Shown here: one piece after another, positions 9,440-40,246 of the stretch | How the letters are laid out: each line of letters starts with the position of its first letter | How positions within the stretch are numbered: the stretch's first letter is position 1 | Assembly (NCBI GenBank): GCA_010909165.1 | Contig: VJWM01000221.1 | Coordinates: 1 to 64,000, forward strand | DNA from: Anthoceros angustus | Lineage: Eukaryota; Plantae; Anthocerotophyta | DNA length: 64,000 bases | Direction: 5' to 3' | Position numbers and translations under genes: made by a program | Notes under the pieces: generated by a model | The model's database searches: none | Seen by the model: only the letters and a program-made list of their open reading frames with translations | What the model was told of the DNA's origin: nothing

Positions 9440-12400
9440 TATTTATCTTGCTTTTTGTTCTTTGCTTTAACAATTCATCATATCAAAAAATACAAATCAT
9501 ATATCCTTGTTGAATTGAGCCAAGAAAGGGCACAGCAAGGAGAGCATGCCGAAGTTGCAGCCCATGCAGCTACCAGTACATAATGCGGCTTTGCCCCGGA
9601 AAAAACCAAATGAAAGTAGGGTTCCGCCAACTTCTGATTGCAATGTACAAGCGCGGTGGCCTATGCTACTTGCTCATGCATCACAATCGGACCGTGAACT
9701 GCTCCAGCCATTCACAATCATAAAACACACCATCCAAATGTGATAAACAATGCAACAAACTAATACACAAATGTGAACCGGGCCAACTTCTTGTCAAGGA
9801 GAAGTGGCAAACCAATTGCAACAGAAATCATCTCATGGGAGGGAAGAAGACATCTGGAAGCTTCTTGGTTTTTCAGACACATCCATCACAAGATGCAGTT
9901 TGCTTCAAAGAATCATCCAAGCGGTAACCAGCCAGCAATCATCGACATCCTGCCATCACTCAAGACACTCAACTGCACATCCTACCACTGCACCACACTC
10001 ACTCACTATGCAACTGCGCCACTAGCATCAAGGCACTCCGCCCAATCCCTTCAAATAGTATTTTGCAATCTCTCTCTGCAGCAGGTGCTTTCCTTCTACA
10101 ACCTCTTTCTCCCAACTAGAGTTTCCCGTGTGAATGGAATAGCTGCCTCCGCACCTGCCCGACTCCCACAAGCATCTTTCAAAGGGATAAGAGCCCTTGC
10201 AACCTAGTCGAACATTGTCCAACTCCGCTCTTGTCGTTCGCCTTGTACTCCTATCCATGCCTCATCGACGGACCATAAAAAGCAAGACACTTCATGATCC
10301 GAAAAAAAAAGGTGGCAAATACAACAGGCATATCGAGGATGCTACCGAATTGTATACATCATCGCATCAAATTCCTTCGGATTGAAAGAACCTTTCGTGC
10401 TGGCTCCGTCCTTCAAGAGGACACCCTCTCCTTCGCGTGATCCGCCTCCTCACAACTCCTCCGATCGCAATACTGAAAAGCACATTTTGTAGGGTGATGT
10501 TGGAACAGATGGCAAATTCCTCCTTCATACGCTGAAGCTTCTCAAGGTCCAATTCTTTCCAAACCTTTGCACCTTTGTACCTTGCGGTGGGAATCCATAT
10601 GGTTCACCAAAAGCATTCGCCGCGGCACACTTTCTTCTTATCAATCGTTGGCCAAGCTCATGGTCCATTTACGCTCCCTTGAACATCGCCATGCAAAACC
10701 GCACCTGCTCCAAGCACCTTTGCCAGGCCAAAAATCCTCCGCGTATTGTCGGGCCGTCCACAATCGCAGTGACTTGTGTGATCATTGGAAAGTGGCAGTT
10801 CACACCTGTAGACTTGCATACTTGCCGTGTGTTCAGTTAGAGTGACCTTCTCGATTGTCTGTGCCAATTCACCTCCGCCACACTTGCTCAACATGGATTG
10901 CACAAGAGTGGACTTGCCCACATTCTCCTCCCCAACCACAAGAATTACTTTATAGAAAATGCGGAGTTTCTCATCTGCCCTGCAAATGTCATATATCACG
11001 GCGGCTCGGTCCACAAACCGTAGCTGAGACTCTTGCTCTAGTTTCCCGTCAACGTCTGTATCTGCGAGGTTTGATGGAATCCGTGTTCCCGGGAGCTTGG
11101 AGGTACTGATTTCCGTTCGTAACCGTTTCAAAACATCCGGAGTGGTCCTGCTTATAATCGTCCTCTCCAGCTCCGAAATACTGGCACTGCTACTCATCTT
11201 CTCATTCCAGAGCACCAACCCAAGCAGCTTGAGAAAGTCTTTACCATACTTTTCCAGTTTTACCTTGTCCTCTAGTGCATTCAAAGGTCGATCTGCCATG
11301 ATAGGGGAAGATTCTAGTCACCGGTATTGCTACATTCCTCCTCCGCATCTGTAATCCCGCTATTATTTCCGTGCTTATTAATTGTTGGCAGCTACGAGAC
11401 TAGTTCCCAAATCAACTCATGCGATCTCGTTTAGGATCGATCAAAAGATGCTTCTAATTGAAGCATTGTTTTCATTCCACCACTCATTCTTTGTGCATAT
11501 TTGGTGTATGTTCGTACCTGAAAGGTCATGTCGCCAGTGATAATTTCTGCCAGGAGAGTCGAGACTTCAGGCCGCAAGTCATCCCTGATGAGGGTTGCCA
11601 GTGATTTGTCGACACCACCGCCAAACTTCGCGTGCAGGAATTTGAAGGGGTATTTGTGTGCGTGAGGAAAGGTAGTGCTGCAGGTGGGAGGGTCTAAACC
11701 GTGTAGCAGCAACCGGCTCCCATGGTTACCTGATGCAGTTGAAGCACGGTTCTCGAGGGCGAATTTGCAAAGGCAGCGAAAATAGGCTTCAGCCACAAGG
11801 CTATCCTCATACTCTTCACCCAGAAGGTGTTGAACTCCTTTGTTATGCAAGCATGTAACGATCTCCAGTTGGATTGTCTTATGCGACAATCTTTTCGAAG
11901 GCCCATGCCTTTATGTCACCGAAGGCATAAATCACATGTACTTTTCATCGATCCTTTCACCTCAAGGCACATTTCGCTGGAACGCCCTTAACCCCTCGAA
12001 ACAAGAGCTCCGGATGTTCTCCGCCACGGACACAATCTTCTTGACCGTGACCGAGTCCGACACCCCAAGCATCTTAGGCGGTCCGAGTTCAACTAGAGGT
12101 GGATCAAGACTGTGATCGTGGCCAACTACGGTTGGTTGCTCTGACCACTTGAGGATTTTCCCAAGTAGACCGCCATTTTGTGAGACTTTATGTGCGCCTC
12201 GTGATTTCGCCTGCAGCTCCTCCCGGCTTCGCCCAGCCGATGCGGGTAGAAATTATCGGACCTTCTCCTCCCATGGGAACATACCATGCTACCGTTGAAG
12301 TCCGCCTCGGCTTCACCAAGCCGCAACTAGTGTGGTGATGTAGCTGCGGCCTTGAACAACATCTCTTGAAATCTCGCCCACCCAATCACAGGAGATAGGC

Positions 12401-13123
12401 GGCACGAGAATGTGTATTTACATTTCCTTCACGTCCTGTAAAAGATCATCAATTTTGGGGCCTCACTTGATCGAAATGGCCTTCACGCCCGCCACCACCT
12501 TCTTGTGGCATTGCAAACCGATCAGGTTGTTGAAGACAACAGGGTCCTCTGGTGTCACAATGTTGAAGAGCCTATCCTCGATGCCACACTCTCGTGAAGA
12601 AGCTTGCGCCCGCCGCCAATGTGGGGAGCCCCAAACCCGATTGCGATGACCAACTCGAAGTTTAGGAGCATAGTGGCCAACTTGTACTTGATAAGAACCG
12701 GAAAGAACGCGCCTCCCAAGCTATGCCCGCACCACTTTTGTGGGGACGCCAGTATGGGTGTTTGGACTTGAAGAGGTCGAGGAGGCGCACGGCGACGTCA
12801 CCAAGAGCCGAAGCCTTGATGGAAGAGGCCATGGTCCTGGCCCATGCACCGAGATCATTGTTGTTCGTCATCCGGCTCGCCCCACCGTGGTGTCGATCAG
12901 ACGTGCGCTCTTGGTGCCCGGCGGATGTAGAGTGTGCCATCCACATCACGGCACACACCATCTTCGCACCACTTCCTCGCCGTGGTGTGACGAACTCGGT
13001 GGTCCGAGCTGACCTTCGCACCTCACCGTTGAGCTTGGTCAAAGTAGACGATGCGGCCGAGAAAGGCAGCTCGCTCACGAACGACGGCCGGAAGCTTCCT
13101 GCATTGCCCTCGACCGTCGCCAT
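9440..13123 (-). CDS. Lipase class 3 - hydrophobic segment - P-loop GTPase-like fusion protein, copy 1 (many frameshifts; 3' end uncertain)
   Basis: ATG MATVEGNAG at 13123; lipase region aligns with cleaner copies. Contains VILVVGEENVGKSTLVQ (~10909-10933), IVDGP in an alternate frame at 10751-10764, and LLVNHMD. No introns evident. Confidence 0.65.
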
Positions 13124-13327
13124 GGGCCAACAATGTCCTTCACTCTGTCAACTCAACTGTTAGGAAAAGAGGTGAGACTTTATAAAGAGATGAGACTTTA
13201 CAGAGAGGAACAGAAACACTCCCATACACTACGAGTAGGGCTTGATGTAGTCCTAGCCTTGAACCCCATCGATCAACACGCAAAACCACTTGCACACACC
13301 GCATCCCACGAATTGGTGGGCTTGGCC

Positions 13328-13462: not shown

Positions 13463-13499
13463 TTGAATCCTCCTAGTAACTTCACTTGCCCTTTACTTT

Positions 13500-14211: not shown

Positions 14212-15270
14212 TCATGTGCTCGGAAAGCCGTGCCAGTCACTCGGACCCGCTCCTTGTGTACGAAATACATCCACGACTGGCATCTTCAGAGAATCGTTCA
14301 AACGGCACGTGAATTCAGTTGCAACGAGTTTAGATTGGAAGCAAACTCTAAACTGATGAAAGAAATACATAGGGGCTTAACCGTGGGCTGAAATTGTTGA
14401 TTTAAGGATGCTGTGAGGGCCTTGTTATCGAAGCTGAGCAATGGACAATTCTACTCCACTTGAGGCCAAATACATTCAGACCCCAAAGAAAGGCAAAACG
14501 CAGACAACCACAATCATGTTCACACTGTCGTCATATCAGAGCATCCGGGACAAGTGTAAGAAGTGATCCGGAAGAAGTGACCAGTTCCAGACAGAACCTA
14601 TGGGAGTCTGGGAACGTCAGAATGTGACCTGAAATAGCTCGTCTTCCAAATGGCATGGAATGCTGTCAAGAACGTTCTTCTCTGCAGTTTAAAATTCCCT
14701 GCTGCGACGTAGTTGTGGAAATTTGTGGAAACTCACGCCTTCGAGAACCTGGATGTGACAAGTTAGTTGGCGAGCATCCTGGAAAGATTGAAATAGAGAA
14801 GGAAATTACTTATGGACGAAGGGAAGTTCATGTGCAAATGAAGCAGTGAGCGCAAAACGAGACCCACCTGGATGAGTGCGGGAACAGGGGCAGCAGTTTC
14901 GGGCCCCTGCAGGACATTCATTTCACATCCAGTTAATGCACCCTTTCCAGTCCTCTGCTGACATCAACCGCTTGGTCCCTGGAAACCATCTCTGCATGGA
15001 AAGGGAAAATGTGACTGTCAACTCTTCTCGTGTCGTTCTTCGTAAATCAAGTAGCCATGCACCATCATCGCCATACTGGTCCTTCACGTGCCTTGTTGAG
15101 CTTTAGAGAGGGCAAGTGCTACAGGTGTACAGTTGTATCCTCGCGCTCGACATCTAGGATCGATGAATGCCTTGTATCAGATGGAATACGAAGATTTCTT
15201 TCCTTGAATATCGCGTCGTATTTTACGAGGGAGTGAAGGTTGTGTTCTCAACCGCACCTTTGTAACATGC
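14212..15270 (-). other. Duplicated segment X with small exon-like blocks of unknown origin
   Basis: Re-occurs at 39113-39500 and 40503-41473. Short AG..GT bounded open blocks on the minus strand (e.g. GPETAAPVPALIQ, DARQLTCHIQVLEG); no family recognised. Confidence 0.35.
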
Positions 15271-15275
15271 TATGG

Positions 15276-16724
15276 TCTCAACGTTGTCTGTAGCATGCCA
15301 AAGATTACTTAATGCTGGTAGGGCCACATCAAGGGAAAACGATATCCCCAGGTATGCAAAGCATTGACTAAAGAAGCTCTTACCTCAGACGGGAAACTTT
15401 TAGCAAAAGACACAGAAACCATTCCGTGCTGATCAGCGAGGTGTCAAAGCCAATATGATCAAAATGGGCTGCCAGCCTGTGAAAGCCACCAAGACTTCTG
15501 TGAGACACGAACTTGAGGTGCTAACTCTGCGGTCGCGTACAAACATGTGGAGTTAGACGACGCACCGTGGACATTTTTCACAAAAACTTCGTTGAAGACA
15601 CGCTGCTGGACGTGACACCCTGTCAGGTTCTCCGAGTAACAATCACTGAACAGAACACTTTCCAGCAATGCGGCGAGCATCCAGAAGGCCTGTTCCTCGG
15701 TTTTCATCACAAGGAGCAACAGTGCTGCCACATAGTTCATTCCCTGAATAGAGTAAGCAGGCTCGGCGTTATAATCCATCCATACCCCCAAAACCTTAAC
15801 AGGGCCTCGGATTCGCACAAGTTAAAGCTTTTGATACACAGGAAAGGCACTCCTACCTGGCAATAACCAATATCAGAATCTCGAAATGAGTAGGCAACGA
15901 GGATCCGACGCAATGTAGCCCTTCCTTCCTCGCTGTTCACCCAAGGATGAGATGGAAATGTCCTGGATAGATCCTACAGGACGTCACACGCGGTAACATG
16001 TTGCCTTGCCTCAGGAGGCCTTCAAGTTAAGCAAGTTGGCAGATGGGGCCACCACGTCTACAGACATCTCCTGCTTTGGAACGAGCTCAAATGGGAAACT
16101 TGGTCAATCTGGTGTGTCGCAGGGGTTTGCCTATCAACCACAGCTTCAGTGAGGTCCTGGTAGTAACTATCGGGCACTGTGGATCGCTTCTTGGCAGCCC
16201 CAGACAAAGCCTGCCAAACTCGAGGTCTCAGAGACGGAGGGATGCCTTTCCAAATCAGCTTCTTCAGCTGGACAGACCTTGTTAGGTTGGATATGGAGAG
16301 ATGACACAAGGTTGCCCTGCTCAGAATGAGCCGAAATTTCCGGCTGCAGATACCATCCTGCACCCTTGTTTGCCTCCATAGCCCACCACACCCGACCCTG
16401 CTCGGCAACCCTCTCCTTCACGAGATTGAAAACCACAGCATCTTCGGCAGACAGCTCGAGACAGAATCCATACATATCTACAACTTTAACGGTGATGTTC
16501 TTCCGTGTGTGAGTCAATCCTCTGCTCTCCACTCGGGTTTCCCCGGGATAACCTCGAACCAGGGCATCCTGAGAACCTCCCAAACGCTCAAAGCCGAACA
16601 TATTCGTGGCTGTTCCACGGGATGACGCTAGGGTTGCTGTAGGACTTCCCAAATAAATTTAGCCGCTCTTGGCTCTTCCGAATCCTCCCACCAGCGGCTC
16701 GCGTGCACGTTTTGAGACTCGCAT
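15276..16724 (-). pseudogene. TBC-domain Rab GTPase-activating protein (GRTP1-like plant clade), 3'-truncated, copy 1
   Basis: Exons give DMYGF..GRVWWAMEANKGAGWYL, KGIPPSLRPRVW..SGAAKKRSTVPDSYY, DLSRTFPSHPW, AYSFRDSDIGYCQ, GMNYVAALLLLVMKTEEQAFWML and TEWFLCLF. The last exon breaks off after TTLR at 15276. Frameshift near 16300. Confidence 0.85.
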
Positions 16725-17950
16725 GTCGTCTGAAGAACCCCAACTGTCTGTCTGCGCTCAGTAGACCTCGGTTACACTCCTGCTCCGATTCTCATATGTT
16801 AGATAAATATTTCGGTTACACTCCTGGTCTGATTCGCTGCTAGTATGATCCTCATGTGCTGGACATATGTCAGTCACATTGCACGCTTCATCCCGCACTC
16901 ATGCAGCTTTCAAATGACCAAGCCTCGGCAGCAAAACCACCTGACAAACATACCACAAAATCCATCAAAGAGCCGTTCCCATCCACTATCCTCACCACTA
17001 CAGCAATCCTGGAAAGGCAGAACTGGCAAATCACTTCACCAAGCCAGAATGCCAGCGATTCCCCTCCTGAACGGGACGAGAGGTTGCAAATGAGTCGAAC
17101 CGCAAACGTACGGGTTGCCAAATTCCGACCACAGCTCGGAAGGCTGATTTCCGGCACTCTTGCGCATCAACGATCAGCAGACCTAAAGTCAGCAGGCACT
17201 CGAAAACACTCTAACCACGAATCACAGCAAGCGCAATGTCTGCTACGCCGCAGAGCAAGCGCTCCCGTTCGGCATCACAAAACCCCAGCAGAACACATGA
17301 TGCGCCAGTTCAAATTCCGAACGAAGCAAGCCAGAAAGAAAACACGGAAACCGTACAATGCCATTCGAAAACATGCAGCCACTCAAAAACAGGACAGCAA
17401 GCTTGAGTCACAGCTACCGGCAAGCACAGTCCACTTCAACAAAACTCACCAGGCACAGATCGGGCACAGCGCATCCGTCCTCAAGCACACGGTCACCCCC
17501 ACGCTCCTGGAAGTCGCAGCTAGCCCTGACCGAGATCCGCTCCCACGGCTCCAACGGTCTCCGTCTCCACCAAACCGGCAGCAGCGCAGGAAACAGGAAC
17601 AAGCAGCGCAGCGGGGCAACAGAACCCGGCGTCTGAGAGCGGAAGCTGGCGGAAGGGCTGGCATAACCGACAAAGCAAAGCGCCACCGATCCACGGCCCA
17701 GCCAGCCACCTTGCGGGAGCGAGCATCAAGCCCGAGGCTCAAAATCGCAGATTTTCCCGCCCGCTGCACAAGCAAAAGCAGCAGGCGGCATTGCACCAAC
17801 CAGCTGCGGGCGCGTGGGGTTTGCGACAGGGAGGAGGCGGAGAAGCAACAGCAGAAGCAGCAGTCGTAGCAGATGTGAAGACGTAGAGCATGTGGAGGCG
17901 CTGTTGGAGGTAAGCTAACAGAGATGTGGGGCTTGTGCCTTCGCACAAGC

Positions 17951-18294
17951 TGTTACGGCCCGACGACCACGTGCCAGGATAACTTAGCACTTAGCCTTGC
18001 CAACGGGAACGAGGCTACCTGGAAGAAGAAGTCGCACGACCGTCGGCGCCGCGTTAGAGAATCCCACTGGGAGTGTGTGTCACCGGCTGCCTCAGCCCAC
18101 AGCGAAATAGAAAAAGGCCGCAAGTCTCCCGGTCGTGAGGAAATGGCCCAGTGTACACTAGGGAATGTGGAGACTTTATAAACGGAACGAGATGGGAAAT
18201 CCCAATCTACCGGAGGCGAAAAAGGGACAACCACGACGACGGGGCACCAGGTTAGAGGCGTGCCCCGCACTAATATACTCTATAACGCCTAACA
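17951..18294 (+). mobile_element. Solo LTR, 344 bp
   Basis: TGTTA...TAACA termini, internal TTTATAAA, and further copies at 8594, 19717, 28649 and a 3' part at ~3170-3232. No TSD. Confidence 0.6.
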
Positions 18295-19075: not shown

Positions 19076-20047
19076 TGCCTCGTCGAGCAAGCGCTCCCGT
19101 TCGGCATCACAAACCCCAGAACACATGATGCGCCACTCAAATTCAACGGCAAGCCGAAAGAAAACACGAAACCGTACAATGCCATTCGAAAACATGCACC
19201 ACTCCAAAAGCAGGCAATAGCTTGAGTCACCACGGCAAGCAATCCACTTCAACAAAACTCACGCACAGATCGGGCACAACATCCGTCCTCAAGCACACGG
19301 CCACCCCGCTCCTGGAAGTCGCTAGCCCACGAGATCCGCTCCACGGCTCCAACGGTCTCCGTCTTCACCAAACCGCAGCAGGCAGGAAACAGGAACAAGC
19401 AGCGCAGCGGGGCAACAAAACCCGGCGTCGAGAGCGGAAGCGGAAGGGCCGGGCATAACCGACAGCAAGCGCCACCGATCCACGGCCCCGCCACCTTGCG
19501 GGAGCGAGCATCAAGCCCGAGGCTCAAAATCGCAGATTTTCCCGCCCGCTGACAAGCAAAAGCAAGAAGCGGCATTGCACCAACCACCGCGGGCGCGTGG
19601 GGTTCTGACGAGGAGGAGGCGGAGAAGCGGCAAAAGGCGTCGTGGCGGTGTGAAGACGTAGAGCATGTGGAGGCGCTGTTGGAGTAAGCTAACAGAGATG
19701 TGGGGCGTTGCCTTCAGTAACGGCCCGACCACGTGCCAGGATAACTTAGCACTTAGCCTTGCCAGCGGGAGCGAGGCTACGGAAGAAGAAGTCGCACGAC
19801 CGTCGGCGCCGCGTTAGAGAATCCCACTGGGAGTGTGTCACCGGCTGCCTCAGCCCGCAGCGAAATAGAAAAGGCCGCAAGTCTCCCGGTCGTGAGGGAA
19901 ATGGCCCAGTGTACACTAGGGGAATGTGGAGACTTTATAAACGGAACGAGATGGGAAATCCCATATACCCGGAGGCGAAAAAGGGAACAACCACGACGAC
20001 GGGGCACCAGGTAAGAGGCGTGCCCCTGCTCTAACATACCCTATAAC
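19075..20047. repeat. Degenerate duplicate of 17250-18290 (TBC upstream region + solo LTR)
   Basis: Collinear with 17250-18290 with many 1-4 nt deletions; runs directly into CRE copy 4. Confidence 0.8.
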
Positions 20048-20825
20048 CCTCAATCCTCCCCAAGATGTCATCGTCCGAGATAGGGAAGGGCCTACTTACC
20101 ATTGGTGCCACCGATGCCGCATCTCTAGCACTCGTGACCATCCTAAAGATGGCGCTGGCCAACACCCTTTGCAGGGGGATGGAAACCCGTTGCCTGAAAT
20201 ATTCCACGACACTGGAGAGGGGAGGCCAACGCCGCCCCTATCGTTGTGGTAGGCCCTTGCGCACTCCTTGATAAAACGAGAAAAAACCTTACCTAAGGCC
20301 CTATGGGTTTCAATGGCAAGGAGGATGAAAATATGACCTTGTTGCGTGGGCCTGTACTTGTAAATTTTCTTAGTTGCGCTCCCTTCTGCCGCCCAACCTG
20401 GAGGGTTGATGATGACATGGTCGCTAACGGAATCTCTGGTTGGGTCAGTGACAACCACGTCCGCAACCGAGACATATCCCATCAAGAAAAGGTCATGATA
20501 GAGACGCCATTGAGCGAGTATCCGCTCCTTGAAAGGGAAGAAACCGCCTCCTTGGCCATCGAGAACATGACGTCTTGAACGGTCAGAGTACGTGTGTCGT
20601 TGTCCACCCATTGGACAACGCACTAAGTGGGCTCCAGGGTCGTCGATGGAGGCCCCACAGCAGCAGGCCGGAAGAGAACAGGCTAGTGGTTGGACCAGAC
20701 CCAGGCGAAACTTCATTGCGATAGAAAAGAAGGCGATTGAACGCTGGATGCAAGGCGGGCGAGTCGAACTCGCGAATTCCCTAAGTAGGCGGCGAGCTCT
20801 AGCAGGACGAGGAATAGACATGAGG
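20041..20825 (-). mobile_element. CRE-like RLE fragment, copy 4
   Basis: ORF 20096-20821 includes ACCCGASIDDPGAHLVRC, ADVVVTDP, KKIYKY, AIETHRALGKVFSRFIKECARAY. Confidence 0.8.
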
Positions 20826-22259
20826 TAGGTGGTAACACCAGGAAAGGCTTATATAAGAAGCTACATATACAGTGAATTTTCTATTTAGTCACCTAGTCGG
20901 TCCTGTAACATTTTGTGATTCTTACAATACATCATCACAATCAATGCAATTTAAAATATTATTTTTTCTCTTCCTACAAGACTTTTGTTTTCAACAATTT
21001 ATCATTCAAGGTTACCAAATACCCCGAGTGCACTATCCGTAATAGGGAGCAAGAGCAGATCAGCAAGTATATGTTTTTTCCACTCCTCGCTGGTTAGAAG
21101 GGTGTGGCACAAAGTGGAAAAGTGGAGGGGACGCAGATGCAAGGTGTGGAGAAGTTGATGGCGGCCGGTCTGTGGTGGGCCCATGCCAAATGTCTTAAGA
21201 TTCAAGCGATGCAAAAGGTCTTTACTACTAGTTCAAGTTTTTGATCACGAGATAAAAGATAAGGCGTAAGTCAAGATGAGGACATTTTTAGATTACAGAG
21301 GTTCACAAAAAGGGTTGAAAACGCTAGAAGGAACCCTTTAAAATGAAAAAAAATCAAAAAAAAGTAAAAAGAACAAAAAATGCCAAAACTCAAGGGCAAC
21401 TGCACGCACTTGTATCTAAAAACTGAAATTTTTTGGGTTTGTTTCATATTTGTTTTTGATGTTTTGTTCATTTTTTTGGGAATGGACCGTATGGGAATGC
21501 ACTAGGAAGCATGGACCGTATGGGTTCATGCCTCTGATCTTCTTGACCCGGTGCACACAAGTGCATATTCTTAAAGTCTACATTTCTTTGTAATCCCATT
21601 GTAATGCACTATAGTGAACTTTTTATATACATACTCATGTTTGATCGAGGCTAGGCTAGGCGCGAGGCAGTCACATTCATTCTAAGTCTACCCGAAATCG
21701 AACCCCCAGGGAGTAAGGAGGTCCAAATATTCGCACTTGTGCACGAGATGGCACTCCATGCAAAGATGGCACTTGCCCATTGGAGGGGCCCAAGCCACGG
21801 GGACTAGCTCTCGTTATCTGGAAGCTATCTATCACTCCCAATCTTAGGATTCTTTACCCTGGAGCTATTTTTAAGCTATTTAAGATGTCGGTAGTCTAGA
21901 ATAAGGAAGGGTATGCTTGCCACTAGACCTGAAGATGCAGCGCCTTCCTCATTCGAAGTCCTCTTGATAATCCCTTTGCAGGTTGCCGAAAGAAAGCCAC
22001 CACAAAACACGATTGCCGGAAGAAAGCCACCACAAAACGAAAGGTGACAAAAAATACAATGTTTCTGTGGATTCTTAATTCTTTATCATATATTAAATTA
22101 TATATATTATGATTTATGTATACAAACGATTCAAGATCTCCTCATATGGGGGGGTGTGTGTGTGGAGACGAAGTAAACGGGAATAAACTTAGCGTGTCTT
22201 GCGGACTCGGTGAAGAGAAATTGACGAACCCCGTTTTCTGAGTGGGATGTGATGCCCAA

Positions 22260-27418: not shown

Positions 27419-28648
27419 GTCGTCTGAAGAACCCCAACTGTCTGTCTGCGCTCAGTAGACCTCAGTTACACTCCTGCTCCGATTCTCATATGTTAGATAA
27501 ATATTTCGGTTACACTCCTGGTCTGATTCGCTGCTAGTATGATCCTCATGTGCTGGACATATGTCAGTCACATTGCACGCTTCATCCCGCACTCATGCAG
27601 CTTTCAAATGACCAAGCCTCGGCAGCAAAACCACCTGACAAACATACCACAAAATCCATCAAAGAGCCGTTCCCATCCACTATCCTCACCACTACAGCAA
27701 TCCTGGAAAGGCAGAACTGGCAAATCACTTCACCAAGCCAGAATGCCAGCGATTCCCCTCCTGAACAGGACGAGAGGTTGCAAATGAGTCGAACCGCAAA
27801 CGTACAGGTTGCCAAATTCCGACCACAGCTCGGAAGGCTGATTTCCGGCACTCTTGCGCATCAACGATCAGCAGACCTAAAGGCACTCGAAAACACTCTA
27901 ACCACGAATCACAGCAAGCGCAATGTCTGCTACGCCGCAGAGCAAGCGCTCCCGTTCGGCATCACACAACCCCAGCAGAACACATGATGCGCCAGTTCAA
28001 ATTCGAACGAAGCAAGCCAGAAAGAAAACACGGAAACCGTACATGCCATTCGAAAACATGCAGCCACTCAAAACAGGACAGCAAGCTTGAGTCACAGCTA
28101 CCGGCAAGCACAATCCACTTCAACAAAACTCACCAGGCACAGATCGGGCACAGCGCATCCGTCCTCAAGCACACGGTCACCCCGCTCCTGGAAGTCGCAG
28201 CTAGCCCTGACCGAGATCCGCTCCCACGGCTCCAACGGTCTCCGTCTTCACCAAACCGGCAGCAGCGCAGGAAACAGGAACAAGCAGCGCAGCGGGGCAA
28301 CAGAACCCGGCGTCTGAGAGCGGAAGCTGGCGGAAGGGCCGGGCATAACCGACAAACAAAAGCAAAGCGCCACCGATCCACGGCCCAGCCAGCCACCTTG
28401 CGGGAGCGCGCATCAAGCCCGAGGCTCAAAATCGCAGATTTTCCCGCCCGCTGCACAAGCAAAGCAGCAGGCGGCATTGCACCAACCAGCTGCGGGCGCG
28501 TGGGGTTTGCGACAGAGGAGGAGGCGGAGAAGCAACAGCAGAAGCAGCAGTCATGTAGCAGATGTGAAGACGTAGAGCATGGGCGCTAACAGAGATGTGG
28601 AGCATGTGGAGCGCTAACAGAGATGTGGGGCGTTGCCTTCGCACAAGC

Positions 28649-28972
28649 TGTTACGGCCCGACGACCACGTGCCAGGATAACTTGCACTTAGCCTTGCCAA
28701 CTGGAACGAGGCTACCTGGAAGAAGAAGTCGCACGACCGTCGGCGCCGCGTTAGAGAATCCCACTGGGAGTGTGTCACCGGCTGCCACAGCGAAATAGAA
28801 AAGGCCGCAAGTCTCCCGGTCGTGAGGGAAATGGCCCAGTGTACACAAGGGGAATGTGGAGACTTTATAAAAGGAACGAGATGGGAAATCCCATGTACCC
28901 GGAGGCGAAAAAAAGGGACAACCACGACGGGGCACCAGGTTAGAGGCGTGCCCCACTAATATACCCTATAAC
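28649..28972 (+). mobile_element. Solo LTR copy, fused at its right end to CRE copy 5
   Basis: Aligns with 17951-18290; the terminal TAACA is replaced by CRE 3' sequence. Confidence 0.6.
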
Positions 28973-29670
28973 CCCAATCGTCCCAAGATGTTGCCGTTCG
29001 AGATAGGGAAGGGCCTACTTATCATTGGTGCCACATCTCCACTCGTGATCATCCTAAAGATTGCTGGCCAACACCCTTTGTAGGAATGGAAACCCGTTGC
29101 CTGAAATATGCCACACAACTTGGAAGGGGAGCCCCTATCTCGTTGTGTAGGCCCTTGCACTCCTTGATAAAGCAGAAAAACCTTACCTAAGGCCCATGGG
29201 TTTCAATGGCAAGGGGATGAAAATGCGACCTTGTTGCATGTGCCCTTTTCTAGTTCGCTCCCTTAACACGGAGGTTGATGATGACATATTACCTTCGCGG
29301 AATCGCTGGTTGGGTCGGTGGCTTGAACGTCCGCCAGATCATCCCAGCAGAAAAGGTCGGCTTTGATAGAGGCCATTAGGCGGGCTTTGATAGAGGCATA
29401 GGCTTTGATAGAGAGCGCCATTTGAGCTTTGATAGAGCATATTGAGCTTTTGATAGAGGCATTGGCTATCTTCACCCTCCTTGAAAGGAAGAAACCGCTC
29501 TCCTTGGCCGCCGAGGACATGGCGTCTTGACGGTACGTCATTGTGTAGCAATGCCAGGCGAGAAACTTCAGCGGTGAAAGAAGGCTGCGATTGAATGCAG
29601 GCGGGCCGGGACCTAGGAACACCCTTCCTAAGCAAGGCCGAGGCGAGGATCGTGGGACGAGGAATGACAC
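28966..29670 (-). mobile_element. CRE-like RLE fragment, copy 5 (degenerate, internal gctttgatagag repeats)
   Basis: Aligns with other CRE copies; ASIKADLF in ORF 29263-29742; ctttgatagag repeated ~29362-29460. Confidence 0.65.
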
Positions 29671-30538
29671 GAGGTAGGTGGTAACACCAAGGCTTATATA
29701 GCTCCATATACTGAATTTTCTATTTAGTCGCGTAGGTAACACGAGAAGGCTTATATAAGAAGCTACATATACGGTGAATTTTCTATTTAGTCACGTGATG
29801 GGTCCCCTAACATTTTGTGATTCTTACAATACATCATCACAATCAATGCATTAAAAATATTTTTTTTCTCGACTTAAAAATAAGATTAATAGGTTTTAGT
29901 TACTCAACCAACGGAGGATCATGTATATCACCCAAATCTCCTCCTACAAGACTTTTATTTTCAACGTTTATCATTCAGGTTCTCAAGACACCCCGATTAC
30001 TACTCCAGTAATAGGAGCAAGTATATGTTTTCCACTACTATTGGTTAGAAGGGTGTGGCACAAAGTGGAAAAGTGGAGACCTTGAGGCGCAAGGTGTGGA
30101 GAAGTTGATGGCAGGCACAGGGGTGGGCCCATGCCAAATGTCTTAAGATTCAGCGATGCACAAGGTCTTTACTACTAGTTCAAGTTTTTGATCACGAGAT
30201 AAAGGATAAAGGGTAAGTCAAGATGAGGACATATTTAGATTCGAGGTTCACAAAAGGGTTGAAAGCTAGAAGGAACCCTTTAAAATGAAAAAATAAAAAA
30301 TATGTAGAGAACAAAATGCCAAAACTCAAGGGCAAGTGCGCACTTATATCCTAAAAATAAATTTTTTGGGTTTGTTTCATTGTTTTGATTTTTGTTCATT
30401 TTGAGAATGAACCGTTTGAATCGGAAGCATGAACTATGGGTTCATGCCTCTAGTCTTGACCCCAGTGCTCACACAAGTGCGTATTCTTAAAGTCTACATT
30501 TCTAATCCCATTGTTTACTATAGTGAACTTTCTATAAG

Positions 30539-31981: not shown

Positions 31982-32599
31982 TACTCATGTTTGATCGAGG
32001 CTGGGCAGTGCGCGAAACGGTCACATTCATTCATTAAGTCACCCAGGAGTAAGGAGGTCCAAATATCCGCTTGTGTATGGGTCCATGCAAAGATGGCACT
32101 TGCTCAATGGAGGGAGCCACGAGGACTAGCTCGTTACGGAAGCTATCTCTATCACTCCCAATCTTAGGATTTACTGGAGCTATTTTTAAGCTATTTAAGA
32201 TGTCATAATCTAGAATAAGGGAAGGGTATGCTTGCCACTAGACACGAAGATGCGCGCCTCATTCAAGTCCTCTTGATAATTAATCCCTTTGCAGGTTGCC
32301 GAAGGAAAGCCACCACAGAACACGATTGCCGGAAGAAAGCCACCACCAAACGCAAGGTGACAAAAAATACAATGTTTCTGTGGGTGCTTAATTCTTTATC
32401 ATATATTAAATTATACATATTATGATTTATGTATACAAACGATTCAAGATCTCCTCCATATGGGGGGGTGTGTGTGGAGACGAAGTAAACGGGAATAAAC
32501 TTAGCGTGTCTTTCGGACTCGGTGCAGAGATATCGACGAACCCCGTTTTTTGAGTAGGATGTGATGCCCAATCATATTTATCTTGGTTCTTATTCTTCG

Positions 32600-35500
32600 C
32601 TTTAACAATTAATCATAACAAGAAATACAAATAATATATCCTTGTTGAATTGAGCCAAGAAAGGCCACAAGGAGAGCATGCAGTTCCAGCCATGCTACCG
32701 ATATATAATCGCTTTGCCCGGAAAAACCAAATGAAAGTAGGGTTTCGCCAACTCATGATTGAAATGTACAAGCGCTATGCTCCTTGCTCATGCATCACAA
32801 ATTGGGCTGCCGAGCCATTCACAATCATAAAACACCATCCAAATTTGACAAACAATGCAACAATCTACACCCACACAAATACCGTGAACTGGCCGAACTA
32901 CTTGTCAAGGAGAAGTGGCAAACTGAATTGCAACCAGAAATCATCTGCGAATGGAGGGAAGAAGACATCCGAAGCTTCTTGGTTTTTCCACATCCATCAC
33001 AAGATCACGGGTTTGCTTCAAAGAATCATCCAAGCAGGCGGCCAACAATCATGACATCCACGCCATAAGCTCAATACACTCAATCGCATCCTACGATGCT
33101 GCACTCAAACTCACTATGCAACTTGACGCGGTGCCAGCATTTGGAGACTCGATTTCAATCCCTTCTCGAAATAGTATTTTGCAATCTCTCTACTGCAGCG
33201 GGCCTTCTACAATGTCTTTCTCCCAATTAGAGTTTCTCACCGTGTCGCCGGTGAGAATTGCCTCCGCCCCGGCTATCGCCCGACTCCACAAGCATCTTTC
33301 AAAGGGATAAGAGCCCTTGCAACCTAGTCGAACATTGTCCAACTCCGCTCTTGTCGCTTTTGGTCTTGTACTCCTATCCATGCCTCGTGATGGACCATAA
33401 AAAGCAAGACACTTAAAAACAAAAGCAGGCAAGCGATCCGGTATACCTCGGCGAGGATGCTACCGTGTATGCATCATGGTACTCTGATCCTTTAGGATTG
33501 AAAGAACCTTTTCGCTGGCTCTCCTTCAAGAGGACACCCTCTCCTTGAGCGTGATGCCTCCTCATACATTTCCTCCTCTGATCGCAATACCGTGAAAAGT
33601 ACATTTTGTAGGGTGATGTTGGAACAGCTGGCAAATTCCTCCTTGAGACGCTGAAGCTTCTCAAGGTTCAATTCTTCCCAAACCATTGCAACCCTTGTAC
33701 CTTGCAGGTGGGAATCCATACGGTTCACCAAAAGCATCTGCTTCGCAACCGGGCACACTTTCTTTTTATCAATCGTTTGGGCAAGCTCATGGTCCTGTTC
33801 TCGTCTCCTTGAACATCGCCATCGCCAAGCAAAATCGCACCCGTTCCAAGCACCTTTGCCAGCCAAAAATCCTCGTGTGACAGGTGGTATTGGTGCCCAC
33901 ATCCTGCAGGTGACTTGTGTGACCCTGGAAAGTGGCGAGTCACACCATGACTTGCATACTTGCCGTGTGTTCGATTAGAGTGGCTTGTCGATTATGCATG
34001 CCAATTCACCTCCACACTTGCTCAACATGGATTGCACAAGAGTGGACTTGCCACATTCTCCTCCCAACCCACAGAATTACTTTATAGAAAATGCGGAGTT
34101 TCTCATCGCCTGCAAATGTCATGCATCACGGCGCTCGGTCCACAAACCGTGTAGCTGACTCTTGCGTTAGTGTCCGTCTTCTGCGAGGTTTGATGGAATC
34201 CGTGTTCCGGGAGCTTGGAGGTCGATTTGTTTCATGCTTGTTTCCAAAACATCCGGAGTGCTCCTGCATAATCTCCTCTCCAGCTCCAGTACTGCCAGAA
34301 ATACTGCCACTGGTGCTCATCTCCTCGTCCGAGCACCAACCCGGCGACTTGAGAAAGTCTTCATCATACTTTCCGATTTTACCTCGTCCTCTAGTATAAT
34401 TTGTTTGGTTCCACTTCAAATGCACCATGAAGTGCGACCCTAAGCATTGCTACCATTCCTCCACAGCTAATCACCTGTACTCCACTAATTCTTGATTAAG
34501 TTGAAAGCTCGACACTAGCTGGAAAATTACTGACTCTTCGGTCTCGGTTTACGATCAAACACGGATGCTTGAATCGTAGGTTTTCATCAATCCCTCCTTC
34601 ATTCTTTGAAATATGTCTTCTCTATTTTCCCTTGAGGAGCGTTGCCAGTGATAACCTGCCATCAGAATCGAGACCTCGTCCAAGTCATCCACTGATGAGG
34701 GTTGCAGCGTGATTGGTCGACGATGGCTAAAACTTCGTGCAGGAATTGAAAGGGTATTTGTGTGCGTGAGGAAAGGTTGTCGCTGCGGTGGGAGGGTCTA
34801 ACGTGTAGCAACCAGCTCCATGGTCCCAGACTGTTGAAGCACGTGTCCCGAGGGCGAGCTTGCAAAGGCATCGGAAATACGCCTCAACCACAAGGCTATC
34901 CTCATTCTTCACGCACAATGGTTTGAAGGTGTTCGGATCGCCTTTGTTGTCTTGAAGCATGTGACAATCTCCAGTTGGATTGTCTTATCGTGAGCAGATC
35001 CTTTCAAGGCGTCCATGCCTTTATGTCGGTGAAAGGCATAAATCACATGTACCTTGTCTTAGCATACGCAAACCTTTCCACCTCTGCGTACCATTTCACA
35101 GAACGTCCTTAACCCTAGCCTCTCGAAACAAGAGCTCCAGATGTTCTCCCGTCACGGACACAATAATCTTCTTGATGCGAGTCTGCGAAACATCGCATCT
35201 TAGGCGGTCGGGTCAACCAAGGTGGATCAACATGACCGGGATCGAGGGGCCAACTACGGTTGGTTGCCCATTGGACCACTTGAGGATTTTCTCCAAGTAG
35301 ACCGCCATTTTGTGAGACTTTATGTGCGCCTCTGTGATTTCGCCCTGCAGCTCCTCCCCGGCTTCGTCCAGGCCGATGCGACGGTAGAAATTATCGGACC
35401 TTCTCCACTGTCCCATGGGAACATACCATGCGTTACCGTTGTGTGAAGTCTGCCCTCTGCGCTTCACCTCCAAGCTGGCTGCAACTAGTGTGGTGATGTA

Positions 35501-36401
35501 GCCTGCGGCCTTGAACAACATCTCTTCGGGCGAAATCCCTCGCCCCACCCAATCACACAGGAGATAGGCGGCCACGTACAGGAACAGGTACTTTACATTT
35601 TCCTCCACGTCCTGTAAAAGATCATCGAATTTCTGGGGGGGCCTCACTTGATCGAAATGGCCTTCTTCACCTGCTCCACCACCAGTCCTGTGCCATTGCA
35701 AACTGATTGGGGCAGGTTGTTGAAGAGTCTGGGAACAGGGTCCCCTGGTGTCACAATGTTGAAGAGCCTTTCCTCGATGCCAGTCTCTCTCAGGTAGTTC
35801 CTTGCAGCTCCGTCGCCAATGGGGAGCCCCAAACCCGATTGCAATGGCCCCGAACTTGTCTAGTATCCTCATATGTCTGGAGGAAAGTGGCCAACTTGTA
35901 CTTGATAAGAACCAGATGCGCAACCGCGCCTCCCAAGCTATGCCCGCAGAACACCACTTTTGTGGGGACGCCGTAGCATGGGTGTTTGGACTTGAAGAGG
36001 TCGTAGAGGAGGCGCACCGAGCAGCATCGGTCAGCCAAGAGCCAGAAGCCTTGATGGAAGTGGCCCTGGATGGTCCCGTCCATGCACCCGAGATCATTGT
36101 TGTTCGTCAGCTCCGTCTGCTCCACCAGGGTGTCGATCAGGACGTCTGTGCCGCTCTTGGTGCCCCGGAAGCAGATGTAGAGTGTGCCATCCCTGTCCCT
36201 GGCACACACCATCTTCGTACCCACTTCCTCGGCCGCCGTGGTGTGGACGAACTCGAAAGGTGGTCCGAGCTGGGACCTTCGCACCTCCGCCTGAAGTTGA
36301 GCTTGGTCATCGAAGTAGACGATGCGGCTGAGAAAGGCAGCTCGCTCTACGCAGGCCACTGACGGCTGGAAGCTTCCTGCATTGCCCTCGACCGTCGCCA
36401 T
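32600..36401 (-). CDS. Lipase 3 - hydrophobic segment - GTPase-like fusion, copy 3 (frameshifted)
   Basis: ORF 35790-36401 reads MATVEGNAG..CFRGT..HFHQGF..CGHSLGGAVAHL. Downstream frames give HIKSHKMAVY and KQMLLVNRMDSH. Confidence 0.7.
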
Positions 36402-36509
36402 GGGCCAACAATGTCCTTCACTCTGTCAACTCAAACAGGAAAAGAGGTGAGGCTTTGTAGAGAGGAACAGTAACACTCCCATACACTACGAGTAGGGCTT
36501 GATGTAGTC

Positions 36510-37721
36510 CTAGCCTTGAACCCCATCGATCGTAGGCAGAGGTCCGGGTCCAACTAGAGGCGGATCATCATCATCAGGATGAGGGTGAACTAGAGTTTGC
36601 CGCCCACTGGACCACTTGAGGACTCTCTCCAAGTAGACCGCCATTCTGTGAGACTTCATGTGCTCCTCTGTGACTTCGCCCTGCAGCTCCTCCCCGGCTT
36701 CGTCCAGCCCGATGCGACGGTAGAAATTATCGGACAATCTCCACTGCGCCGCGGGAACATACCATGCGTTAACGTTGTGTGAAGTCTGCCCCCTACGCTT
36801 CACCTCCAAGCCGGCTGCAACTAGTGTGGTGATGCAGCCTGCGGCCTTGGCCAACATCTCTCGGGGCGAGAGCTCTCGCCCCAACCAATCAAACAGGAGA
36901 TGGGCGGCCACGTCCAGGAACAGCCATTTCAAACTTTCCTTCACTTCCTGTAAAACATCATCGAATTTCTGAGGGGGCCTCACTTGATCAAAAATGGCCT
37001 TCTTCACCTGCTCCACCACCAGTCCTGTGCCATTGCAAACTGATTGGGGCAGGTTGTTGAAGAGTCTGGGAACAGGGTCCCCTGGTGTCACAATGTTGAA
37101 GAGCCTTTCCTCGACGCCAGTCTCTCTCAGGTAGTTCCTTGCAGCTCCGTCGCCAATGTGGGGAGCCCCAAACCCGATTGCAATGGCCCCGAACTCGTCA
37201 GGTTCCTCATATGTCTGGAGGAAAGTGGCCACCCTGTACTTGATAAGAACCAGATGCGCAACCGCGCCTCCCAAGCTATGCCCGCAGAACACCACTTTTG
37301 TGGGGACGCCGTAACATGGGTGTTCGGAATTGAAGAGGTCGTAGAGGAGGTGCACCGCGCAGCATCGGTCAGCCAAGAGCCAGAAGCCTTGATGGAAGTG
37401 GCCCTGGATGGTCCCGTCCATGCACCCGAGATCATTGTTGTTCGTCAGCTCCCTCTGCTCCACCAGGGTGTCGATCAGGATGTCTGTGCTGCTGTTGGTG
37501 CCCCGGAAGCAGATGTAGAGTGTGTCATCCCAGTCCCTGGCACACACCATCTTCATACCCACGTCCTCGACCGCCGTGGTGTGGACGAACTTGAAATGTC
37601 GTCTGCGCTGGTAACTTCGCACCTCCGCCTGAAATTGAGCTTGGTCATCGAAGTAGACGCGGCTGAGAATGGCAGCTCGCTCTACGCAGGCCACTGACGG
37701 CTGGAAGCTTCCTGCATTGCA
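36510..37721 (-). CDS. Lipase class 3 domain of copy 4 (clean ORF, lacks first codons)
   Basis: ORF 36510-37754 has FRGT, HQGF, GHSLGG (Ser), GDPVP (Asp) and SHRMAVY (His): an intact class-3 lipase triad. Confidence 0.85.
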   Translation of the reverse strand, partial: CNAGSFQPSVACVERAAILSRVYFDDQAQFQAEVRSYQRRRHFKFVHTTAVEDVGMKMVCARDWDDTLYICFRGTNSSTDILIDTLVEQRELTNNNDLGCMDGTIQGHFHQGFWLLADRCCAVHLLYDLFNSEHPCYGVPTKVVFCGHSLGGAVAHLVLIKYRVATFLQTYEEPDEFGAIAIGFGAPHIGDGAARNYLRETGVEERLFNIVTPGDPVPRLFNNLPQSVCNGTGLVVEQVKKAIFDQVRPPQKFDDVLQEVKESLKWLFLDVAAHLLFDWLGRELSPREMLAKAAGCITTLVAAGLEVKRRGQTSHNVNAWYVPAAQWRLSDNFYRRIGLDEAGEELQGEVTEEHMKSHRMAVYLERVLKWSSGRQTLVHPHPDDDDPPLVGPGPLPTIDGVQG

Positions 37722-39122
37722 CAAGAGTGGTCTTGCCCACATTCTCCTCCCCAACCAGAAGAATTACTTTATAGAAAATGCGGAGTTTCTCATCTGCCCT
37801 GCAAATGTCATGCATCACGGCGGCTCGGTCCACAAACTGTAGCCAAGACTCTTGCGTTAGTGTCCCGTCTTTACCTGCGAGGTTCGCTGGGATCCGTTTC
37901 CCCGGGAGCTTGGAGCTACTGATTTGTTTCCGCAACTGTTCCAAATCATCCGGAGTGCTCCTGCATTTAATCTTACCCTCCAGCTCCGAAGTACTGCCAG
38001 AAATACTGCCACTGGTGCTCATCTCCTCGTCCGAAAGCACCAACCAAAGCAGCTTGAGAAAGGATTCATCATAGCTTTTCACTCTTACCAGCTTATCTAT
38101 TTCCTCCCCTTTCGCTGCCTTCAATGCTACTGCAATGAGGGTGCCTATTACTCCCAAAGCACCTACTACTAGTGGCACTCCTACTGCTGCTGTTACTCCT
38201 ACTACTCCTGCTATTGATGTTTCTTCTACTATTCCGGCTAGTGCTAAAGCAACTGCCGAGCCGACACCGGAGATAGTGAACCCTTTGAGCATCTGTGCAC
38301 GAAGGTGAATATTTTCTGTAAGTTGGCCCATTGCTGCGAATTGACGCAGCATTCTGTGTACAAATGTTGCGTCTACTCGTCCCTTGAGGATCATGTTGCC
38401 AGTGATAACTTCTGCCATCAGAATCGAAACCTGTGGCCGCAAGTCATCCCTGATGATGTTCGCCAGCGGCTTATCGCCACGATGGCTAAAACACTCGTGC
38501 AGGAATTGAAAGGGATATTTGTCTGCGTGAGGAAAGGTATGCTGCAGGTGGGAGGGTCTAGACCGTCTAGCAGCAACCAGCTGCCATGGTTCCCTGAGAC
38601 TGTTGAAGCACGTGTCCCGAGGGCGAGCTTGCAAAGGCATCGGAAATACGCCTCAGCCACAAGGCTGTCCCCATACTCTTCACGCACTGGTTTGAAGGTG
38701 TTCCGGATCGCCTTCGTTGTCTGCCCGAAGCATGTGACAATCTCCAGTTGGATTGTATCGCTCAGCAGATGCTCCCTGCAAGCCTTGTCCATGCCATTTG
38801 TGCCAGCTGAAAGGCGTAGTTCACATGTAGGATTGTCCGCATCTGAGTGCCTTTCCACCTCTGCGTGCCATTTCACAGGAACGTCCTTAACCCTAGCCTC
38901 TCGAAACAAGAGCTCCAGATGTCGTCCCGTCACGGACACAATAATCGAAGTCCCATCTGCATCGAGTCTGCGAGACGCCCCATCGATCGTAGGCAGAGGT
39001 CCGGGTCCAACTAGAGGCGGATCATCATCATCAGGATGAGGGTGAACTAGAGTTTGCCGCCCACTGGACCACTTGAGGACTCTCTCCAAGTAGACCGCCA
39101 TTCTGTGAGACTTCATGTGCTC
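37716..39122 (-). CDS. Middle domain, Gly/Ala/Val-rich hydrophobic segment and Walker A of copy 4
   Basis: ORFs 38418-39116 and 37645-38640 give GVGSAVALALAGIV...GVPLVVGALGVIGTLIAVAL and VILLVGEENVGKTTLVQ, cut at the ATTGCA junction. Confidence 0.8.
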
Positions 39123-39500
39123 GGAAAGCCGTGCCAGTCACTCGGACCCGCTCCTTGTGTACGAAATACATCCACAACTGGCATCTTCAGAGAATCGTTC
39201 AAAAGGCACGTGAATTCAGTTGCAACGAGTTTAGATTGGAAGCAAACTCTAAACTGATGAAAGAAATACATAGGGGCTTAACCGTGGGCTCCGAAATTGT
39301 TGATTTAAGGATGCTGTGAGGGCCTTGTTATCGAAGCTGAGCAATGGACAATACTAAACCACTTGAGGCCAAATACTTTCAGACCCCAAAGAAAGGCAAA
39401 AACGCAGACAACCACAATCATGTTCACACTGTCGTCATATCAGAGCATCCGGGACAAGTGTAAGAAGTGATCCGGAAGAAGTGACCAGTTCCAGACAGAA
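39113..39500. repeat. Segment X duplicate inserted within the lipase gene
   Basis: Matches 14212-14595. Confidence 0.9.
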
Positions 39501-40246
39501 ATGGCCTTCTTCACCTGCTCCACCACCAGTCCTGTGCCATTGCAAACTGATTGGGGCAGGTTGTTGAAGAGTCTGGGAACAGGGTCCCCTGGTGTCACAA
39601 TGTTGAAGAGCCTTTCCTCGACGCCAGTCTCTCTCAGGTAGTTCCTTGCAGCTCCGTCGCCAATGTGGGGAGCCCCAAACCCGATTGCAATGGCCCCGAA
39701 CTCGTCAGGTTCCTCATATGTCTGGAGGAAAGTGGCCACCCTGTACTTGATAAGAACCAGATGCGCAACCGCGCCTCCCAAGCTATGCCCGCAGAACACC
39801 ACTTTTGTGGGGACGCCGTAACATGGGTGTTCGGAATTGAAGAGGTCGTAGAGGAGGTGCACCGCGCAGCATCGGTCAGCCAAGAGCCAGAAGCCTTGAT
39901 GGAAGTGGCCCTGGATGGTCCCGTCCATGCACCCGAGATCATTGTTGTTCGTCAGCTCCCTCTGCTCCACCAGGGTGTCGATCAGGATGTCTGTGCTGCT
40001 GTTGGTGCCCCGGAAGCAGATGTAGAGTGTGTCATCCCAGTCCCTGGCACACACCATCTTCATACCCACGTCCTCGACCGCCGTGGTGTGGACGAACTTG
40101 AAATGTCGTCTGCGCTGGTAACTTCGCACCTCCGCCTGAAATTGAGCTTGGTCATCGAAGTAGACGACGCGGCTGAGAATGGCAGCTCGCTCTACGCAGG
40201 CCACTGACGGCTGGAAGCTTCCTGCATTGCATTCGACCGTCGCCAT
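39498..40246 (-). CDS. Lipase class 3 N-terminal part, copy 5 (with its own upstream TATA at ~40428-40435)
   Basis: ORF 39440-40351 from MATVECNAG; nearly identical to 37000-37715. Confidence 0.85.

Follow-up and report, generated by a model that had tools for sequence, protein, structure and literature searches.

The stretch of DNA analysed here, referred to as the window, comprises 64,000 nucleotides of contig VJWM01000221.1 of Anthoceros angustus (Anthocerotophyta). Five copies of a gene that joins a class-3 lipase, a middle region, a linker and a P-loop GTPase were found in it, all of them on the minus strand. A first-pass annotation, made from the sequence alone, had described five full or partial copies and treated them as an amplified family of working genes. 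The five copies do exist and three of them, A to C, are full-length, but none is an intact gene, since copy D contains the lipase only and copy E is interrupted and truncated. The array is decayed and rearranged and is under no selection, and the idea of working genes had to be abandoned for it. We consider it very probable that what lies here is a tandem array derived from one intronless gene, all five members being dead or fragmentary; the parent gene belongs to a real but uncharacterised family of non-flowering plants. The copies and their parts are located as follows.

9071 to 36531: three tandem segmental repeat units of about 10-13 kb (starts at 9071, 21902 and 32222), each with one pseudogene copy, delimited by self-comparison.
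10368 to 13123, minus strand: copy A, a full-length pseudogene recognised by motifs, pieces of open reading frame (ORF) and frame changes; lipase at 13105-12061, middle region at 11895-11557, linker and G domain at 11299-10368.
23220 to 25892, minus strand: copy B, a full-length pseudogene and the most decayed of the copies, judged by its frame changes.
26125 to 26220, minus strand: a stray fragment of a lipase C-terminal end (SHRMAVY...PPLVGPGPLP) upstream of copy B, 90% identical to copy D.
33478 to 36401, minus strand: copy C, a full-length pseudogene recognised by motifs and frame changes.
36513 to 37753, minus strand: copy D, a lipase-only fragment with an open ORF of 414 codons and a Lipase_3 match.
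37714 to 38094, minus strand: linker and start of the G domain of copy E, cut off at GEENVGKT (37752-37729).
38110 to 38283, minus strand: Gly/Ala/Val-rich hydrophobic segment of copy E, about 58 residues with a central Pro, seen by hydropathy.
38425 to 39125, minus strand: C-terminal end of the copy E lipase (SHRMAVY) and the conserved middle beta-sandwich domain.
39113 to 39500, no strand assigned: a repeat element inside the copy E lipase, found by self-comparison.
39500 to 40246, minus strand: native start of copy E (MATVECNAG) and N-terminal part of its lipase, recognised by motifs, ORFs and Pfam.

Self-comparison of the window indicated that the gene-like copies at 9071-13274, 21902-26084 and 32222-36531, each of about 4.2 kb, are colinear and share 79-83% identity, and that the region 36513-40246 holds two much younger partial copies, D and E. 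The lipase part of copy C is 92% identical to D at the DNA level, and D is 99.5% identical to the lipase of copy E. Copy D ends at its 3' side 8 codons past PTIDG, while its 5' end runs into the P-loop of copy E in a different frame, and the native start is absent. In copy E, lipase residues 255-362 are replaced by the 388-bp repeat, and a single frame break of one nucleotide lies near 38540, outside any homopolymer. Such an array would have been built through segmental duplication together with unequal or template-switch rearrangements.

The motifs reported by the first-pass annotation were all recovered on the minus strand, at their reported positions and in the reported order. The nucleophile motif GHSLGG was located at 39790 (E), 37283 (D), 35945 (C) and 12728 (A), GDPVP at 39589 (E), 37082 (D) and 35745 (C), and the His motif SH[RK]MAVY is present in the translated copies. 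For the GTPase part, we found GEENVGKS at 10933 (A), GEENVGKT at 37752 (E), IVDGP at 10764 (A), VNHMD at 10607 (A) and 23445 (B), and VNRMD at 33728 (C). A complete Ser-Asp-His set, which had been claimed for the copies in general, is legible by motif only in C, D and E, because copy A lacks GDPVP and the nucleophile and P-loop motifs of copy B are degenerate. The Pfam profile Lipase_3 (PF01764, cut-off 22) recognised copy D with 60.1 bits (2.9e-16) and the N-terminal part of copy E with 61 bits. The profile MMR_HSR1 (PF01926) gave 21.2 bits for the window piece 10658-11299, just below its cut-off of 21.9, and thus the assignment to the GTPases rests on the intact relatives described below. 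A six-frame scan of the window placed the only Gly/Ala/Val-rich hairpin within the five-copy span in copy E; in A, B and C a non-hydrophobic stretch stands in its place in every frame, and the first-pass description of this feature is not borne out for the array as a whole.

The decay of the copies is extensive. Frame-tolerant alignment against guide proteins required a minimum of 20 frame changes in copy A, which also has one stop, of 23 in copy B and of 17 in copy C. The longest coding pieces are 213, 238 and 297 residues in A, B and C, respectively, out of about 1,080, and no copy among the five, as assembled, has an uninterrupted start-to-stop frame spanning all domains. Between copies A to C, substitutions amount to 17-21%, and the indels range from 1 to 65 nucleotides with no preference for lengths divisible by three; each pair of copies has 138-149 indel runs, of which about 75% have a length not divisible by three. 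Within the lipase part alone, A and B have ten or more frame-breaking indels in identical form, which implies that the unit was duplicated after the gene had died. The ratio of nonsynonymous to synonymous substitution rates (dN/dS) of the open D frame was 1.15 against C, 0.97 against B and 1.12 against A. Copies A, B and C evolve neutrally, with dN/dS about 1. The copies in the window are non-functional as proteins; the lipase-only ORF D may be an exception.

Contigs from two sequencing runs in the Logan collection were compared with the window, namely a DNA run that holds this stretch (X1) and an RNA-like run (X2). The X1 contigs show almost no substitutions; they differ from the window by losses of one nucleotide, all in homopolymers of three to five bases, at 36692, 36789, 36973, 36990, 37079, 37952, 38076, 39398, 39932, 40008 and 40042, with two bases lost at 37900. 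Five of the losses fall within D, where the window version holds the 414-codon lipase frame, and we therefore take X1, not the window, as the noisy side. The X1 data resemble noisy long reads and are unsuited to frame correction in this genome.

It could be argued that the young part of the array is still used, either through a lipase-only protein translated from ORF D or through truncated tandem units of 2,457 nucleotides running from the lipase to the P-loop, the array being larger in the plant than in the assembly. We regard this as improbable, even though several observations speak for it and have to be set against our own reading, as do some features of the family given further below. The frame of D is unbroken despite dN/dS about 1, its Ser-Asp-His set is intact, and its near identity with E indicates a recent origin; the D lineage may have been functional until recently. 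One X1 contig, which concerns the stretches 36521-37162 and 37753-38977, joins 38977 to 36521 ('goes back 2457') and so leads from the D lipase into the middle region of E by way of a shared exact repeat of 145 nucleotides. This join may be a path of the assembly graph through the repeat, or an additional truncated tandem unit of 2,457 nucleotides that is missing from the assembly, and the D/E part of the assembly may accordingly be incomplete; neither possibility gives a complete gene. A further point against our own reading, but not in favour of this alternative, is that the RNA-like run X2 covers only the repeat at 39113-39500, with a contig depth of about 230. However, D has neither a native start nor an upstream region and its junction to E is out of frame, its dN/dS against C exceeds 1, the unit implied by the X1 join, if it is real, would be without the body of the G domain, and X2 has no RNA contig on D or E outside the repeat. 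The repeat itself, of about 390 bp, occurs in three copies (39113-39500, 14212-14596 and 40502-40864) that are 97-99% identical, and its contig depth is raised in both runs. This repeat could represent a mobile element that is transcribed, or else belong to an upstream region.

A second possibility is that the reading frames only seem broken, through errors of assembly such as miscalled homopolymers, and that an amplified family of working genes is present after all. The X1 contigs agree with this inasmuch as they differ from the window only in homopolymer lengths, by one nucleotide at a time. However, X1 is the noisy side at the five differences in D, the frame break of copy E lies outside a homopolymer, and miscalls would explain neither the level of substitution and the indel sizes among A to C nor the frame-breaking indels common to A and B, nor dN/dS about 1. 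In addition, unbroken ORFs for a PPR protein of 1502 residues and an ABC1 kinase-like protein of 596 residues are found in the same window, which shows that the assembly is locally sound. Errors of assembly are thus a very unlikely source of the breaks, and we retain the reading of a dead array.

The intact form of the gene was sought with pieces of the window copies or with intact relatives as queries. A word search with the 331-residue ORF of copy E retrieved P0007, a protein of 446 residues with 49% identity. Word searches with the window ORFs returned only lipase-only proteins and this one C-terminal half, with a length filter that hides full-length kin. P0007 is encoded on a 6-kb Logan contig of another sample (L001), where it adjoins a BURP-domain gene. 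On one strand, L001 contains the end of the lipase, the middle region, the hydrophobic segment, the linker and a full G domain, with one frame change. The change lies at 1034-1055, between the middle region and the hydrophobic segment, where the spacer is shorter than in copy E; this copy may also be damaged, or the contig may contain an error. That lipase and GTPase belong to two adjacent genes and are fused only in appearance has next to no likelihood. Although the gene caller split the L001 locus into two products at the frame change, the parts follow one another in the same order and without a spacer in copies A to C, in E and in L001, single annotated proteins of Marchantia, Riccia, Ceratopteris and Adiantum carry both Pfam domains, and the middle domain that lies between the two parts is conserved throughout.

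A phmmer search with the linker and G domain of P0007 gave 22 proteins at E <=0.001 among 1.84 billion representatives. The relatives include Mp3g03570 (971 residues) and Mp3g03600 (1517 residues) of Marchantia polymorpha and proteins of M. paleacea; R1flu_005112, R1flu_005116 and R1flu_005120 of Riccia fluitans and proteins of R. sorocarpa; several proteins of Ceratopteris richardii; and one of 1071 residues in Adiantum nelumboides. In Ginkgo biloba, Gb_30153 (821 residues) has the G domain, and its lipase region is degenerate and visible only in the alignment. The proteins with Lipase_3 and MMR_HSR1 in Marchantia, Riccia, Ceratopteris and Adiantum are 865-1556 residues long. Eight relatives passed both Pfam profiles: the Lipase_3 scores of the relatives were 30.6-64.6 bits, and MMR_HSR1 scored 34.9 bits in P0007 and 26.8-52.3 in the intact relatives scanned, R1flu_005116 excepted. 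Mosses, lycophytes and flowering plants were absent from the 22 matches, and a word search with the family alignment yielded fern relatives only and no hornwort protein. Eight ORFs of the window, looked up as exact sequences, had no entry in the searched collection. Matches in Closterium, the mushroom Leucocoprinus and the moth Spodoptera were set aside as P-loop repeat proteins or unrelated GTPases without a lipase, and P0002 (641 residues, a lipase with a tail) has only a weak motif match to the family (E 0.035).

The architecture is genuine and, within the reach of these searches, the family is limited to the hornwort-like sample, liverworts, ferns and Ginkgo. The claim of the first-pass annotation that lipase and P-loop parts lie in one intronless gene is borne out by the three colinear copies, by L001 and by the single gene models in five other genera. 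The annotation was also right that this is not a named family: the relatives are entered as 'hypothetical protein' or under a domain name only, and we found no paper that mentions the Marchantia gene identifiers or the pairing of Lipase_3 with MMR_HSR1. It had named separate genes, a characterised housekeeping family or a missing GTPase fold as findings that would speak against it, and none of these was encountered. The locus tags are neighbours in Marchantia (Mp3g03570 to Mp3g03600) and in Riccia (R1flu_005112 to 005120), from which we take tandem clustering to be common in the family. In the ESM Atlas, streptophyte clusters of about 1,020 residues, annotated with Lipase_3 only, scored 0.91 against a whole fern protein of the family and 0.81 against its non-lipase part. 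Such clusters may represent relatives in flowering plants with a C-terminal part that Pfam fails to recognise.

Alignments of the family revealed conserved columns in all of its parts, which are arranged as an N-terminal class-3 lipase or lipase-like alpha/beta-hydrolase, an Ig-like beta-sandwich, a helical region, a hairpin in one subgroup, a helical linker and the G domain. The lipase has the conserved motifs FCGHSLGGA, DPVP and H-x-M-x-x-Y, the last of which holds the triad His; in the elbow GH[SG]xGG the His is invariant, as are D226 and P227 in the alignment. The middle domain keeps invariant P, G, L, W, T and F residues. Modelled from a window ORF, it was predicted to be a seven-strand Ig-like beta-sandwich with a predicted local distance difference test score (pLDDT) of 75-91 over residues 40-130, and it matched only generic Ig-like domains (Z up to 7.0). 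The hydrophobic segment of the subgroup is Gly/Ala-rich, about 55-60 residues long, and has a conserved central Pro.

The features of the family that count against our overall reading concern the nucleophile and this hairpin. The nucleophile Ser is replaced by Gly in Mp3g03570, R1flu_005120, the Ginkgo protein and one Logan protein, the elbows being GHGIGG, GHGLGG, GHGLAG and GFGWGG (proteins P0010, which is Mp3g03570, P0013, P0018 and P0011). It follows that lipolysis is not a function shared by the whole family, and the lipolytic enzyme proposed by the first-pass annotation fails as a general description. The hairpin was modelled at pLDDT <50 and is absent both from copies A-C and from the long liverwort paralogs, which keep the Ser. 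Being found in one of five window copies and missing from a whole liverwort subgroup, it does not make these proteins membrane-anchored in general, as had been supposed; membrane anchoring is not a general feature. The variation in Ser and hairpin suggests, at the level of sequence, two functional subtypes in the family.

The C-terminal TRAFAC G domain has about 215 residues, with G1 as GxxNxGK[ST], G2 as HT, G3 as VDxPG and G4 as NxxD. G1 reads GP[EQ]N[AV]GK[ST] in the family and GEENVGK[ST] in the window and L001, and G3 reads IVDGP in the window and VDSPG or VDFPG in the relatives. In G4 (N-x-x-D), the Lys is replaced by H, R, Q or M and is kept in two ferns and one Riccia protein. K246 is invariant in the alignment, and G240, N243, G245, H273, T274 and D298 are nearly so. 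As the first-pass annotation had anticipated, a GTPase fold is predicted: the model of P0007 forms a canonical Ras-like G fold over residues 231-446, mostly with pLDDT >85, and matches EngB with Z 15.3 (root-mean-square deviation 2.5 over 152 residues), followed by Rab, Gtr1 and Rho at Z 14-15. Foldseek ranked GIMAP2 (5.9e-08) and Toc33 (3e-07) first, PADLOC matched LeoA (8e-07), the nearest Atlas folds were bacterial MMR_HSR1/Dynamin_N proteins, and in NCBIfam Era and Der were best, both weakly. Which relatives of the G domain come first differs between Foldseek, Z-scores, Pfam, NCBIfam, PADLOC and the Atlas. The G domains of the window copies themselves are too fragmented for modelling.

Among known systems, the lipase head leads to the EDS1 family of seed plants. 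The sequence of D alone, compared with solved structures, placed EDS1 first (1.7e-06) together with PAD4. With a profile of twelve lipase domains of the family, the eight best PDB sequences were all EDS1 or PAD4 (2e-12 to 8e-9); fungal lipases reached 1.5e-06 at best and plant PLA1 only 5e-03. EDS1, PAD4 and SAG101 share with the present family a class-3 lipase-like alpha/beta-hydrolase head. Some members of the present family lack the nucleophile Ser, and the role of the EDS1 family is likewise not known to need catalysis. However, the match to EDS1/PAD4 spans only about 100 residues at the nucleophile elbow, and few other plant class-3 lipases are in the PDB, so that the kinship is a lead from which a sister relation does not follow. 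The two families also differ in what follows the head, which is the EP domain in the EDS1 family and the Ig-like sandwich, hairpin and G domain here; no Pfam match to the EP domain was obtained in any copy or relative, and the post-lipase region of D, E and L001 gave no Pfam family other than Lipase_3/Abhydrolase. Their distribution differs as well, between seed plants on the one hand and liverworts, ferns, Ginkgo and the hornwort-like sample on the other.

For the GTPase half, the best Foldseek matches are the septin-like TRAFAC proteins GIMAP/AIG1 and Toc33/34, which, like members of the present family, have a hydrophobic membrane segment beside the G domain. GIMAP2 sits on lipid droplets. 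In contrast to these proteins, the hydrophobic segment of the family precedes the G domain instead of following it, and the G domain is fused to a lipase; by Z-score, EngB, Rab, Gtr1 and Rho are equal or better. The Pfam profile AIG1 (PF04548) reached at best 24.4, 23.1 and 22.3 bits in the relatives, all below the cut-off of 27. The MMR_HSR1 profile, the top Z-score of EngB and the PADLOC match to LeoA connect the domain with Era, EngA, EngB and LeoA, but the KH, stalk, paddle and DLP helical domains of these proteins are missing, the Lys of G4 is replaced (NHxD, NRxD, NQxD), and the family is a eukaryotic multi-domain fusion. Dynamins possess a large G domain and a stalk, whereas the G domain here is small. 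Dynamin_N matched only with the P-loop end of its profile (positions 1-22 to 1-35 of 168), or with profile positions 101-147 in P0007, and there was no DLP_helical match. The hydrolase-NLRs of liverworts follow a similar logic, with a hydrolase head and a nucleotide switch expanded in tandem in non-seed plants. Their switch is a STAND NB-ARC ATPase and that of the present family a small TRAFAC G domain; in Pfam, nSTAND1 gave 20 bits in one relative (cut-off 27.1), and no NB-ARC or LRR matches were seen.

For the intact relatives, a mechanism can be proposed. The hairpin would act as a monotopic anchor that keeps the protein at the cytosolic surface of a membrane or lipid droplet, and lipase and G domain would both lie in the cytosol. 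A Ras-type catalytic Gln after DxxG is missing from the G domain, and GTP hydrolysis is therefore likely to occur on dimerisation or assembly. The domain is probably a nucleotide-dependent switch of dimerisation or assembly, as in GIMAP, Toc and dynamin-like GTPases, and its nucleotide state may control whether the lipase head is active. Where the nucleophile Ser is lacking, the same switch might instead govern the head as a scaffold or binding module. A GTP-switched lipolytic effector of defence or cell death, as put forward in the first-pass annotation, might be inferred for such proteins, and the suggestion of a defence role comes only from the tandem birth-and-death of the genes and the EDS1-like head. 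In a bolder version, the intact family would have served non-flowering land plants since ancient times in immunity or cell death, with an EDS1-related head that a proline-kinked hairpin fixes to a membrane or lipid droplet and a dimerising G domain controls, and with a lipase-like domain that shares a recent ancestor with EDS1, PAD4 and SAG101. We hold this to be improbable. If it were true, the unexplained origin of the EDS1/PAD4/SAG101 family would gain a concrete candidate, and the birth-and-death arrays here, in Marchantia and in Riccia would reflect an arms race.

The domains at both ends of these proteins are well known, and their combination of a lipase or lipase-like head with an Ig-like sandwich, an optional hairpin and a small G domain is present in databases only as 'hypothetical protein'. 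If the tie to EDS1/PAD4 holds in a proper tree, it would bear on the origin of EDS1 in seed plants and on what non-seed plants use instead. Marchantia is easily transformed and, with Mp3g03570 and Mp3g03600, offers two clean members of the family, so that such ideas are directly testable there. The window itself is an ordinary record of gene death and rearrangement.

Some further features were observed in the repeat units and elsewhere in the window. Between the pseudogene copies, 15496-18289 and 26196-28975 are 96% identical and thus far younger than the flanking copies of 80% identity, which suggests gene conversion or a later insertion. The ORFs of these two segments, like the other ORFs of the repeat units, had no Pfam match. 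A strong skew of A over T characterises 16-20 kb of the window. A local tandem duplication of about 2.2 kb, with 89% identity, occupies 3474-8588; it is related to 19975-22445 and 29735-30531 and belongs to the larger repeat units. Downstream of the array in window coordinates, a fragment of a neprosin-domain ORF lies at 49502-49996, and the ABC1 kinase-like ORF at 51371-53161 is in an island of 63% G+C with a strong GC skew. The unbroken PPR protein at 55695-60203 has an E motif and internal repeats of about 312 nucleotides, and just upstream of its gene an inverted and diverged block of PPR-gene repeats is found at 53735-55120.

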